A DNA stretch of 58,560 nucleotides, counting the filler, from Basidiobolus meristosporus CBS 931.73 (Eukaryota; Fungi; Basidiobolomycota), in NCBI GenBank assembly GCA_002104905.1. It is 3 parts of 3 records of this genome, joined end to end, with 100 filler letters (N's around TTAATTAATTAA, not from the genome) between each part and the next. Parts side by side here need not be neighbours in the genome. Positions count along the whole stretch, not along the records: positions 25,708 to 45,833 come from MCFE01001011.1; 2 more parts are not named here. The stretch is one strand, 5' to 3'. How positions within the stretch are numbered: the stretch's first letter is position 1; every line of letters begins with the position of its first letter. The position numbers were made by a program, and so were the translations under genes. The notes under the pieces are model-generated. The model saw nothing but the letters and a program-made list of their open reading frames with translations, was not told the origin of the DNA and made no database searches. Positions 31,631-37,033 of this stretch are shown piece by piece.

Positions 31631-32020
31631 ATATATATACACCTCGGTGGAAAACCACTTATCTTTTTTAATTCTTCAATAGATGTACTCGCATGGCAAA
31701 GAAAATACTGGCTAGCATTGAATTGAGGACCCTGTTAACAATGGTAATGTGTATGTCTCTTATTATCAACTTTGTGCGATCAAGGGGGCATTCATTGATG
31801 TATGACTGATGGCTATTTTGGAGCATTTTTGTTATCCACACTACAGATGCTTTTGTTTCTTTCGGTTTGTTAATAGAAATCTCTCTGTGGCTACGCTATT
31901 AAGAGCTTCTGCCGTTTTCCCATATATAGCGCAATCTAGAAGTACACTAAATGTGAAAAGTAATCAAGCCTAACAGATCAGATTTCCGTATTTTCTAAGA
32001 CGGTTGTTTGCACTGGTACT

Positions 32021-32092
32021 GGCTCAATGGTTTAGTGGTATAATTCTCCCTTAGGGTGGGAGAGGTCCTGGGTTCAATTCCCAGTTGAGCCC
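32021..32092 (+). tRNA. tRNA-Pro(AGG)
   Basis: CTCCC-TTAGGGT-GGGAG; GGTTCAATTCC. Confidence 0.95.
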
Positions 32093-32356
32093 TTCTTTTG
32101 TTTGTTTTCCTGTCAAAATGGATTGTTAGTAAGAATGGGGTACTCTGAGCTGCAGCAGCAATTAATGTTGTGGATTCCCCTTGGTAATTCTTGATTGACA
32201 AGTAATGTAAAAATGCAATTTTTCCATCACAACAGAGCCCTCTATTTAGTTACTTGGGGCAACTGACTACCTTTGGTTGTAATACGCACAAAGCCCGATT
32301 TAGTATCTACGCTAGGCATACTTGATCCAAATAATTTAGAGGGTCAGGAAAAGTAA

Positions 32357-32430
32357 TGTCTTCGCTCGGATTCGAACCGAGGACCGTCTGTGTGTTAGAC
32401 AGACGTGATAACCAACTACACCACGAAGAC
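32357..32430 (-). tRNA. tRNA-Val(AAC)
   Basis: TCTGT-CTAACAC-ACAGA; acceptor GTCTTCG/CGAAGAC. Confidence 0.95.
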
Positions 32431-32737
32431 ATATGTTTATTGGAAAGGATAGTAATGTACTTGATTGTGTTTATACATAAGGTCAATGTATAGCAAGTTT
32501 TGTGTACCGCGTGTCAAGTGCACTGGCCAAGGAATATGCCAAATTTAAGTACATCGCAACCACGGTTTCCAGCATAATTACAAATGTTTATTTTAGGTAT
32601 GGAAAAAGTCTATTGGGGTCTGCTATGGGATTGGATAGTATATCTACCTGTTGTCCAAGAAATGAATAGCGTATGATAGTTACATTATGATTTTAGAAAA
32701 TCAAATGTCCAACGATCATACCATATATTATAAGTGT

Positions 32738-32809
32738 GGGGGGTTGGCGCAACGGTAGCGCGTTCGCCTCCAGAGCGAAAGGTTGCGTGTTCAAATCACG
32801 CACTCCTCA
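32738..32809 (+). tRNA. tRNA-Trp(CCA)
   Basis: TTCGC-CTCCAGA-GCGAA; identical to 42226-42297. Confidence 0.95.
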
Positions 32810-33049
32810 CTTAATTTTTGCCACTTTTTAGCACATGTTGTAATGATGGTTAACTCAACCTCAGTCGCAGAGCAAGGTATTGTTTATTGATACATATCTC
32901 TTTGCTGTGTGTTCCTTTGTCCTATTTGATAACGTGTATGTCTACACTATCCATGTGCGGGTTTATTTTAAGCAAAGTTATTGATAACTAATTTATATTG
33001 CTAGCTCAGCTCTGATTACATACATGGCTATATCAGAGCTACAAGCTAA

Positions 33050-33123
33050 GCTCGCATAGCTCAGTTGGTTAGAGCGTGGTGCTAATAACGCCAAGGCCGC
33101 AGGTTTGACCCCTGCTGTGAGCA
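33050..33123 (+). tRNA. tRNA-Ile(AAT), variant with B-box mutation (possibly defective)
   Basis: TGGTG-CTAATAA-CGCCA. T-loop reads GGTTTGA vs GGTTCGA, and the variable loop GGCC vs GGTC, relative to 43593-43666. Confidence 0.85.
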
Positions 33124-33446
33124 TTCTCTTTTAGCCTTAGCGTAGTGTTACATCATGGCTATCCACTTTAGACTTGCGTTTATCTTTTCACGCTTTGCTG
33201 ATATTATCAAGCATTTCACATACCTACTGTACACTCCAATGCCTCTGTATCATCTCTATATTACACCGCTATCAGATGCTCCGGTATATTAGAATGGTAC
33301 TGACTATCCTAGCATAAGAAATTAAGCCACTCAGAGCTTCAGGGGAATTGGGATCTCTATCCGGTGTGATGAAAATGATGTTTCTGTCTTTATGAGTAGT
33401 GCCCAAACCAAAGGGATTGCACCTGGTAGATGGCACTATCCTGGGT

Positions 33447-33518
33447 TCTCGGATAGTATAGTGGTAAGTATCCCTGCCTGTCACGCAGGAGACCCGGGTT
33501 CAATTCCCGGTCCGAGAG
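33447..33518 (+). tRNA. tRNA-Asp(GTC)
   Basis: CCTGC-CTGTCAC-GCAGG; acceptor TCTCGGA/TCCGAGA. Confidence 0.95.
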
Positions 33519-33781
33519 TTTCTTTTGAGCTTTGAAGTAATATTTTGTATGAAAAACCTTGGTGCATGACAGAAACGAAAATCTAACCTCGATTGTGATG
33601 CTAAGTGGCCCCATAGATATTAGTCAAGATACTTTCATTTGTTAATAGAAAGCTCTGACTATATCATTAAGAGTATGTATCGAAATGCTTAGGGTGTGGT
33701 ATACGAACCCTTTGGATTTGCTAGACAATGATATACAAGGATATGTCAACTGTGAATATTTCATAGACTCAACTGTGCTCC

Positions 33782-33853
33782 TCCGCATTGGTCCAGTGGT
33801 CAGGATCTCTCGCTCTCACCGAGAAGGCCGGGGTTCGATTCCCCGATGCGGAA
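33782..33853 (+). tRNA. tRNA-Glu(CTC)
   Basis: TCTCG-CTCTCAC-CGAGA; acceptor TCCGCAT/ATGCGGA. Confidence 0.95.
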
Positions 33854-34495: not shown

Positions 34496-34567
34496 TTCCG
34501 CATCGGGGAATCGAACCCCGGCCTTCTCGGTGAGAGCGAGAGATCCTGACCACTGGACCAATGCGGA
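34496..34567 (-). tRNA. tRNA-Glu(CTC), palindrome mirror copy
   Basis: Reverse complement of 33782-33853. Confidence 0.93.
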
Positions 34568-34830
34568 GGAGCACAGTTGAGTCTATGAAATATTCACAGT
34601 TGACATATCCTTGTATATCATTGTCTAGCAAATCCAAAGGGTTCGTATACCACACCCTAAGCATTTCGATACATACTCTTAATGATATAGTCAGAGCTTT
34701 CTATTAACAAATGAAAGTATCTTGACTAATATCTATGGGGCCACTTAGCATCACAATCGAGGTTAGATTTTCGTTTCTGTCATGCACCAAGGTTTTTCAT
34801 ACAAAATATTACTTCAAAGCTCAAAAGAAA

Positions 34831-34902
34831 CTCTCGGACCGGGAATTGAACCCGGGTCTCCTGCGTGACAGGCAGGGATACTTACCACTATACTATCCGA
34901 GA
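34831..34902 (-). tRNA. tRNA-Asp(GTC), mirror copy
   Basis: Reverse complement of 33447-33518. Confidence 0.93.
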
Positions 34903-35225
34903 ACCCAGGATAGTGCCATCTACCAGGTGCAATCCCTTTGGTTTGGGCACTACTCATAAAGACAGAAACATCATTTTCATCACACCGGATAGAGATCCCA
35001 ATTCCCCTGAAGCTCTGAGTGGCTTAATTTCTTATGCTAGGATAGTCAGTACCATTCTAATATACCGGAGCATCTGATAGCGGTGTAATATAGAGATGAT
35101 ACAGAGGCATTGGAGTGTACAGTAGGTATGTGAAATGCTTGATAATATCAGCAAAGCGTGAAAAGATAAACGCAAGTCTAAAGTGGATAGCCATGATGTA
35201 ACACTACGCTAAGGCTAAAAGAGAA

Positions 35226-35299
35226 TGCTCACAGCAGGGGTCAAACCTGCGGCCTTGGCGTTATTAGCACCACGCTCTAACCAACTGAGCTATGCGAGC
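35226..35299 (-). tRNA. tRNA-Ile(AAT) B-box variant, mirror copy
   Basis: Reverse complement of 33050-33123, including the GGTTTGA change. Confidence 0.83.
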
Positions 35300-35539
35300 T
35301 TAGCTTGTAGCTCTGATATAGCCATGTATGTAATCAGAGCTGAGCTAGCAATATAAATTAGTTATCAATAACTTTGCTTAAAATAAACCCGCACATGGAT
35401 AGTGTAGACATACACGTTATCAAATAGGACAAAGGAACACACAGCAAAGAGATATGTATCAATAAACAATACCTTGCTCTGCGACTGAGGTTGAGTTAAC
35501 CATCATTACAACATGTGCTAAAAAGTGGCAAAAATTAAG

Positions 35540-35611
35540 TGAGGAGTGCGTGATTTGAACACGCAACCTTTCGCTCTGGAGGCGAACGCGCTACCGTTGC
35601 GCCAACCCCCC
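35540..35611 (-). tRNA. tRNA-Trp(CCA), mirror copy
   Basis: Reverse complement of 32738-32809. Confidence 0.93.
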
Positions 35612-35918
35612 ACACTTATAATATATGGTATGATCGTTGGACATTTGATTTTCTAAAATCATAATGTAACTATCATACGCTATTCATTTCTTGGACAACA
35701 GGTAGATATACTATCCAATCCCATAGCAGACCCCAATAGACTTTTTCCATACCTAAAATAAACATTTGTAATTATGCTGGAAACCGTGGTTGCGATGTAC
35801 TTAAATTTGGCATATTCCTTGGCCAGTGCACTTGACACGCGGTACACAAAACTTGCTATACATTGACCTTATGTATAAACACAATCAAGTACATTACTAT
35901 CCTTTCCAATAAACATAT

Positions 35919-35992
35919 GTCTTCGTGGTGTAGTTGGTTATCACGTCTGTCTAACACACAGACGGTCCTCGGTTCGAATCCGAGCGAAGACA
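35919..35992 (+). tRNA. tRNA-Val(AAC), mirror copy
   Basis: Reverse complement of 32357-32430. Confidence 0.93.
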
Positions 35993-36256
35993 TTACTTTT
36001 CCTGACCCTCTAAATTATTTGGATCAAGTATGCCTAGCGTAGATACTAAATCGGGCTTTGTGCGTATTACAACCAAAGGTAGTCAGTTGCCCCAAGTAAC
36101 TAAATAGAGGGCTCTGTTGTGATGGAAAAATTGCATTTTTACATTACTTGTCAATCAAGAATTACCAAGGGGAATCCACAACATTAATTGCTGCTGCAGC
36201 TCAGAGTACCCCATTCTTACTAACAATCCATTTTGACAGGAAAACAAACAAAAGAA

Positions 36257-36328
36257 GGGCTCAACTGGGAATTGAACCCAGGACCTCTCCCACCCTAAGG
36301 GAGAATTATACCACTAAACCATTGAGCC
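36257..36328 (-). tRNA. tRNA-Pro(AGG), mirror copy
   Basis: Reverse complement of 32021-32092. Confidence 0.93.
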
Positions 36329-37033
36329 AGTACCAGTGCAAACAACCGTCTTAGAAAATACGGAAATCTGATCTGTTAGGCTTGATTACTTTTCACATTT
36401 AGTGTACTTCTAGATTGCGCTATATATGGGAAAACGGCAGAAGCTCTTAATAGCGTAGCCACAGAGAGATTTCTATTAACAAACCGAAAGAAACAAAAGC
36501 ATCTGTAGTGTGGATAACAAAAATGCTCCAAAATAGCCATCAGTCATACATCAATGAATGCCCCCTTGATCGCACAAAGTTGATAATAAGAGACATACAC
36601 ATTACCATTGTTAACAGGGTCCTCAATTCAATGCTAGCCAGTATTTTCTTTGCCATGCGAGTACATCTATTGAAGAATTAAAAAAGATAAGTGGTTTTCC
36701 ACCGAGGTGTATTGTTATGAATCGAGGGCAAGCGGAGGAGGACCGGAGGATGTCCAATACGAATCAGAGAGGTTATCTGAATAGTTGATGAACCGGTAAA
36801 AGGTTGATGCTTTATTGATAGTGTTCAAAGGAGTTTATATAGAGATAGCCTCGGAGGGAGAGCTTCCGATAACGTAGGGCAAGCTTCCAAAAGGAGGGTT
36901 CAAGATGTATTAAATAACGTGTGTATCACTGAGTGCGATTGATCGTCTGTGTGGAATTCCAGGTGTTCGATCAGTAGTGTTCAAGTGATCGGTAGTGACT
37001 AGTTAGGATTTAAATCATAACATACTCCCACAC

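Follow-up and report, generated by a model that had tools for sequence, protein, structure and literature searches.

A perfect 5-kb palindrome of transfer RNA genes beside a Ty3-like retrotransposon in the Basidiobolus meristosporus assembly: inverted duplication or false join?

The genome assembly of the fungus Basidiobolus meristosporus CBS 931.73 (GCA_002104905.1) contains an apparently perfect 5-kb palindrome of transfer RNA (tRNA) genes, and the question raised by this locus is whether the structure exists in the genome or was created during assembly. The palindrome lies in a window of 58,560 nucleotides (nt; the whole stretch of DNA that was presented, filler included), and the analysis covers its piece 25708-45833, which is MCFE01001011.1, a short contig of ~20 kb. 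From the sequence, the palindrome appears somewhat more probably to be a real inverted duplication of a block of six tRNA genes, either recent or homogenised by gene conversion, than a product of assembly. The evidence that carries this reading is found at the outer edges of the arms, where one edge coincides with the end of a long terminal repeat (LTR) retrotransposon and the other with what would be the unoccupied form of the same insertion site. The main rival is a false head-to-head join of two real copies.

Arms, spacer and outer junctions

Direct comparison of the two arms, 31637-34118 and 34231-36712, revealed exact reverse complements over 2482 of 2482 nt (0 mismatches and 0 indels), intergenic spacers included, as had been described in the first-pass annotation of this DNA. 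Automated repeat finding gave arms of 2489 nt (31630/36719); however, of the seven bases added at the outer ends three do not match, and the extension was discarded in favour of the limits 31637/36712. An exact inverted repeat of 2.5 kb cannot arise by chance, and this origin was dismissed together with mis-set coordinates, given that the arms are exact at these limits. Each arm contains genes for tRNA-Pro(AGG), Val(AAC), Trp(CCA), Ile(AAT), Asp(GTC) and Glu(CTC), the six listed by the first-pass annotation, which were found by both ARAGORN and Rfam (57-65 bits). An open reading frame (ORF) scan found none longer than 74 amino acids in the arms, and Rfam found no further RNA family above threshold there. 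The parts of the palindrome are as follows, the arms being placed by exact comparison, ARAGORN and Rfam, and the left-arm genes by ARAGORN and Rfam.

31637-34118, plus strand: left arm (the 'empty site' copy, see below)
32021-32092, plus strand: left-arm tRNA-Pro
32356-32431, minus strand: left-arm tRNA-Val
32738-32810, plus strand: left-arm tRNA-Trp
33050-33123, plus strand: left-arm tRNA-Ile
33446-33519, plus strand: left-arm tRNA-Asp
33782-33853, plus strand: left-arm tRNA-Glu
34119-34230: spacer, 112 nt, non-palindromic, containing a HindIII site
34231-36712, minus strand: right arm ('filled site' copy), identical to the left arm in reverse complement
34496-34567: right-arm tRNA-Glu
34830-34903: right-arm tRNA-Asp
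35226-35299: right-arm tRNA-Ile
35539-35611: right-arm tRNA-Trp
35918-35993: right-arm tRNA-Val
36257-36328: right-arm tRNA-Pro

The locus therefore has both features by which a long palindrome is recognised in sequence, namely reverse-complement arms and a short unpaired spacer. The 112 bp between the arms are unique, as previously noted, and their self-complementarity is at chance level (score 16 against a shuffle mean of 18.6), which rules out a degenerate continuation of the palindrome; a strong fold z-score around the spacer is due to the folded segment having taken in 20 nt of either arm. The earlier statement that the spacer is not an adapter also stands, in that no match within 3 mismatches was found to Oxford Nanopore Technologies (ONT) or SMRTbell adapter strings. 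TCTATA/TATAGA motifs are present at the spacer edges. The central 200 bp of the palindrome (34075-34274) have a GC content of 30-31%, compared with 42-43% in the adjoining windows.

Two near-identical copies of one Ty3-like LTR retrotransposon, here called A and B, lie on the contig in inverted orientation. The features that meet at the outer edges of the palindrome are listed below, together with the block of unique sequence to its left (block U).

25708-29484, plus strand: copy A, truncated by the contig end; 3' LTR at 29175-29484
29485-31636: block U, 2152 nt, with a 5S rRNA gene followed by Thr(AGT), Leu(AAG), Tyr(GTA), Asn, Lys, Cys and Ala(AGC) tRNA genes
31559-31630, minus strand: tRNA-Ala(AGC), its 5' end toward the left arm
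31637-31641, plus strand: putative 5-bp target site ATACA, mirrored as TGTAT at 36708-36712
36713-42088, minus strand: copy B, full, 5376 nt; 3' LTR at 36713-37022 and 5' LTR at 41779-42088

The right arm ends between 36712 and 36713, exactly at the terminus of the 310-nt 3' LTR of copy B, which agrees with the claim that the outer edge falls on an LTR end. On the left, the arm begins at position -7 relative to the mature 5' end of tRNA-Ala and, if ATACA was the target site, the insertion would sit at -7 to -11 of this gene. Ty3-type elements target the start sites of RNA polymerase III (Pol III), and Ty3 inserts in either orientation (PMC5911963), while Tj1 integrates at 5S genes as well as at tRNA genes, in the latter case 5-11 nt upstream of the mature 5' end (PMC4600332). 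A position of this kind, ~1-12 nt upstream of a Pol III gene, was found at two junctions: the LTR of copy A terminates 6 nt before the start of the 5S gene, in the same orientation, and the junction of copy B with the arm corresponds to -7 to -11 of tRNA-Ala at the empty site. The third LTR junction, at 42088, is 137 nt from a tRNA-Trp gene. A random breakpoint would have a ~3% chance of falling in such a start-site window and a chance of ~1 in 10,000 of falling on an LTR terminus. A hidden Pol III gene at the outer end of the arm, which could account for the position of copy B, was sought with Rfam in E-value mode and none was found; solo-LTR remnants were likewise absent from the spacer, the arm edge and the flank at 42089-42225.

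Judged by these positions, the junction between LTR and arm was almost certainly made by integrase, and the junction between tRNA-Ala and arm is its matching empty site, the left arm representing the 'empty' and the right arm the 'filled' state. LTR elements do not excise precisely, and a filled site cannot revert to an empty one. Thus, the junctions of the arm with block U and with the LTR must both be biological, the arm exists in two contexts, and both arm copies look biological.

Duplication, false join or consensus artefact

Had the contig been built from a single molecule, by a fold-back read or by a strand switch during amplification (PMC6218980), the flanking sequence would have been mirrored as well; an artefact of this type shows mirror symmetry continuing outward, with an adapter or nothing at the centre. 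At this locus no mirror of block U was found on the right side, nor any second copy by self-BLAST, and the right-hand tRNA cluster at 42089-45833 is not a mirror of block U by the same comparison. Because block U is unmirrored, simple folding back of one molecule cannot have produced the contig; the lack of an adapter match at the centre is a further departure from the fold-back pattern.

The first-pass annotation had also cautioned that the arms might be too perfect for an assembly with homopolymer errors elsewhere. Such errors were indeed seen, as three indels between copies A and B, but the suspicion drawn from the absence of differences between the arms proved weak. At the A-versus-B rate, two arms of 2482 nt would show no difference at all with a probability of 0.14 if the rate is applied by length and of 0.07-0.21 if it is scaled by homopolymer content, and the identity of the arms is therefore not suspicious.

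Several observations weigh against a real inverted duplication. Copy B is without a 5-bp target-site duplication, its flanks being TGTAT and GATGA; either the element copies recombined or the assembler mis-threaded the 5.4-kb repeat. The 5' flank of copy A falls beyond the contig end. The contig is short (20 kb), consists of repeats only and belongs to an assembly with homopolymer errors, and chimeric joins are common in short repeat-only contigs. The spacer had no match in a scan of Joint Genome Institute (JGI) metagenomes. In yeast, according to work attributed to Lobachev et al., long perfect inverted repeats with ~100-nt spacers are reportedly unstable. Finally, the history that would have produced this arrangement needs three events.

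The false head-to-head join, the main rival, is the less probable account but a serious one. It holds that two real copies of arm plus spacer exist, either at two loci or as alleles or subpopulations with an empty and a filled tRNA-Ala site, and that the assembler, misled by a chimeric read of palindromic form (from ONT template-complement fold-back or from a strand switch during whole-genome amplification), linked the two copies in opposite orientation at the spacer. Amplification and long-read chemistry are known to yield palindromic reads that become inverted duplications in assemblies (PMC6218980). The short, repeat-only contig and the homopolymer errors of the assembly fit such a join, the mismatched flanks of copy B are expected if the assembler also mis-threaded the 5.4-kb repeat, and real perfect palindromes with ~100-nt spacers are rare. 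However, a strand-switch chimera of one molecule would mirror block U, the centre shows no adapter match, and the spacer is too short and too non-palindromic to have given a false overlap. A false join also requires a polymorphism or a second locus, a chimeric read and probably a mis-thread.

A quite improbable alternative is that the palindrome arose by inverted-repeat amplification that depends on a replication origin (ODIRA) or by a fold-back, with only one junction seen, and that retrotransposon cDNA, instead of integrating, was captured at the broken end. ODIRA is recognised by a palindromic junction that an unpaired loop interrupts (PMC4689423, PMC10766183), and capture at an end would predict the missing target-site duplication of copy B. 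Against this, ODIRA gives a triplication of three copies, the middle one inverted, with two short-inverted-repeat junctions, whereas no more than two copies and a single inverted junction can be seen here and the other boundary is an LTR end; furthermore, that the edge falls in the Pol III start-site window speaks for integrase rather than for capture. Least likely of all, and by a reckoning that leaves it very little room, is an arm that is single-copy in the genome and was doubled by the assembler or polisher as a collapsed consensus, an account that fits the 0 differences between the arms, although these are not improbable in themselves (P 0.07-0.21), and that is contradicted by outer junctions which differ at the same nucleotide (an empty tRNA-Ala site on one side and an LTR terminus on the other), as is impossible for one copy.

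Under the preferred reading of a real inverted duplication, the order of events may be reconstructed as follows. A segment containing at least the arm and the adjoining tRNA-Ala gene would first have been duplicated head to head, the loop persisting as the spacer and the TCTATA/TATAGA motifs at its edges offering possible microhomology; inverted junctions with a surviving loop have been documented in yeast inverted amplifications (PMC4689423, PMC10766183). The element would then have integrated 7-11 nt upstream of tRNA-Ala in the right copy, cutting the homology of the arms at the LTR terminus. In a third step, recombination between element copies, or mis-threading by the assembler through the 5.4-kb repeat, would have replaced the sequence beyond copy B, removing the second tRNA-Ala gene and leaving copy B without its target-site duplication. 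The identity of the arms could reflect very recent events or arm-to-arm gene conversion, and recency would be in keeping with the identity of the LTRs and of the element copies.

Two other routes were considered and rejected. An inversion between A and B that swapped flanks, or a deletion between B and a mirror-image A, was expected to leave TCATC or GAGAG, and CTCTC and GATGA were observed. Deletion of block U through microhomology was set aside, as the breakpoints have no microhomology.

The retrotransposon and the surrounding Pol III genes

The element has the domain order Ty3-capsid Gag, protease, reverse transcriptase (RT), RNase H (RH) and integrase (IN), and Pfam identified Ty3_capsid, RVP_2, RVT_1, RT_RNaseH, Integrase_H2C2 and rve in copy B. 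Its LTRs are identical, 310 nt long, and run from TGTTATGA to TCATAACA (TG...CA ends). Copy A equals the reverse complement of 36713-40490 with 0 substitutions in 3777 nt and three single-base indels at 25759, 26718 and 27365 (with counterparts in 36713-40490), all of which fall in C/G homopolymers. Each indel disrupts the Gag-Pol frame in one copy only while the other copy reads through, which points to consensus errors rather than mutation and implies one Gag-Pol frame for the intact element. Since its two 310-nt LTRs are identical and the copies differ only by these indels, the element looks recently active.

The primer-binding site of copy B complements a tRNA 3' end with U72 followed by ACCA, the initiator type used by Ty3; no tRNA gene matching it was found on this contig. 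The closest protein to the element Pol in a word search, the length filter of which would overlook an intact polyprotein of ~1450 amino acids, is 55% identical and belongs to an element of the fungus Calcarisporiella. Exact look-up of the ORFs of the stretch in the protein collection gave no match, and a scan of JGI metagenomes with the element Pol found only a relative of 38%.

The 5' leader of copy B contains a 20/40-nt tandem repeat at 41552-41731, five units of which include AGATCGGAAGAG. These letters are the 12 nt with which the Illumina TruSeq adapter begins, and 0 occurrences would be expected by chance. The likeness is probably a coincidence, and adapter trimmers would clip reads at this position and so thin short-read polishing there.

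Taken as a whole, the contig is a cluster of eukaryotic nuclear Pol III genes: 30 tRNA genes and a single 5S rRNA gene lie within 16 kb. There are no protein genes among the clustered tRNA and 5S genes, and the tRNA genes are spaced 120-390 nt apart. Several of the tRNAs have A34 anticodons, a tRNA-Tyr gene has an intron, and a Ser and an Ile gene are likely to form a dimeric gene. The remaining features of the element and the cluster are listed below.

29491-29609, plus strand: 5S rRNA gene (Rfam RF00001, 108.6 bits)
30391-30475: tRNA-Tyr(GTA) with a 13-nt intron after position 37, labelled 'tRNA-???' by ARAGORN
37034-39481, minus strand: RT-RH-IN ORF of copy B
39409-41382, minus strand: Gag-protease ORF of copy B
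~41761-41777: primer-binding site, one base after the 5' LTR of copy B
42089-45833: right-hand tRNA cluster with Trp, Glu(TTC), His, Leu(CAA), Gln, a Ser-Ile dimer, Asp, Arg(ACG), Glu(CTC) and Gly

Within the right-hand cluster, tRNA-Ser(AGA) and tRNA-Ile(AAT) lie on the same strand at 43506-43667 with ~5 nt between them, and the pair looks like a dimeric, co-transcribed tRNA gene; a dimeric Ser-Met tRNA gene is known in Schizosaccharomyces pombe. The order Trp-Ile-Asp-Glu(CTC) occurs both in the arm (32738-33853) and in the right-hand cluster (42226-44767), where the tRNA bodies are 91-100% alike and the intervening spacers are unrelated. This recurring order may represent an old paralogy of tRNA sub-clusters.

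Related architectures and significance

By analogy of layout, the nearest known architecture is the fission-yeast centromere, in which near-perfect inverted repeats with intact tRNA genes lie among tRNA/5S clusters and LTRs (PMC6538654, PMC10085805). The isoacceptors ArgACG, GluTTC, GluCTC, LeuCAA and LeuAAG are shared, as are Asp, Val, Ala and Ile. The similarity is one of layout, and membership in this class is not supported: the fission-yeast core is bound by CENP-A over several kb, whereas the 112 nt found here are shorter than one nucleosome. The published tRNA arrays of S. japonicus have a different tRNA order from this contig (PMC7619369) and Tj1 has other dimensions (PMC4600332), so that an origin of the contig from S. 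japonicus is not supported. Furthermore, the Tf1/Tj1 clade of fission yeast is self-primed with TGTCA termini (PMC10085805), while the present element has a tRNA-type primer-binding site and TGTTATGA termini.

Inverted-repeat centromeres occur in Komagataella and Candida tropicalis. It is conceivable, if very doubtful, that a regional centromere resembling these or those of fission yeasts, but of very small size, has its core in the palindrome, or that the palindrome is a module at a chromatin boundary. The two 2.5-kb arms of tRNA genes, the AT-rich 200-bp centre, a symmetry kept by conversion and retrotransposons drawn in by Pol III targeting would all have a place in such a structure, which we consider hardly probable.

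Among retrotransposons, Tj1 of S. japonicus and Ty3 of S. cerevisiae resemble the element in having their domains in Ty3/gypsy order, in inserting upstream of tRNA and 5S genes at a distance of up to ~12 nt and in accumulating in tRNA-rich regions (PMC4600332, PMC5911963). Tj1 is 5003 nt long with 244-nt LTRs, compared with 5376 nt and 310-nt LTRs here, and Gag-Pol of the present element is apparently one frame rather than dependent on stop-codon readthrough.

Primate Y palindromes, maintained by arm-to-arm conversion, and the ODIRA or fold-back palindromes of yeast also have identical arms and a non-palindromic spacer. The spacers of the Y palindromes are on the kb scale rather than 112 nt; the yeast palindromes share a junction of the interrupted-inverted-repeat type (PMC4689423), but ODIRA yields a triplication with two such junctions, whereas here a retrotransposon apparently created one of the boundaries. 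The palindromic artefacts that come from long-read sequencing and whole-genome amplification are similar in being inverted duplications in small long-read contigs (PMC6218980), and differ from this locus in that its flanks are unmirrored, its centre has no adapter and its outer junctions are of the integrase type.

If the join is false, the locus would serve as a warning that a convincing, adapter-free palindrome can unite halves from two real copies. If the palindrome is real, it would be a natural perfect 5-kb eukaryotic palindrome with a 112-nt spacer, one boundary of which was clipped by retrotransposon integration. The dose of six tRNA genes would be doubled, the site would be expected to be prone to recombination and to form hairpins or cruciforms, and the palindrome combined with the inverted element copies should make flipping of the interior possible. 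It would also provide a compact case for asking whether recency or gene conversion accounts for the survival of long inverted repeats, and for the origin of centromere-like inverted-repeat architectures. The cluster would then appear as a landing pad for an active, start-site-targeting Ty3-like LTR retrotransposon, and the locus as a case of Pol III-targeting retroelements remodelling the tRNA gene clusters in which they insert.

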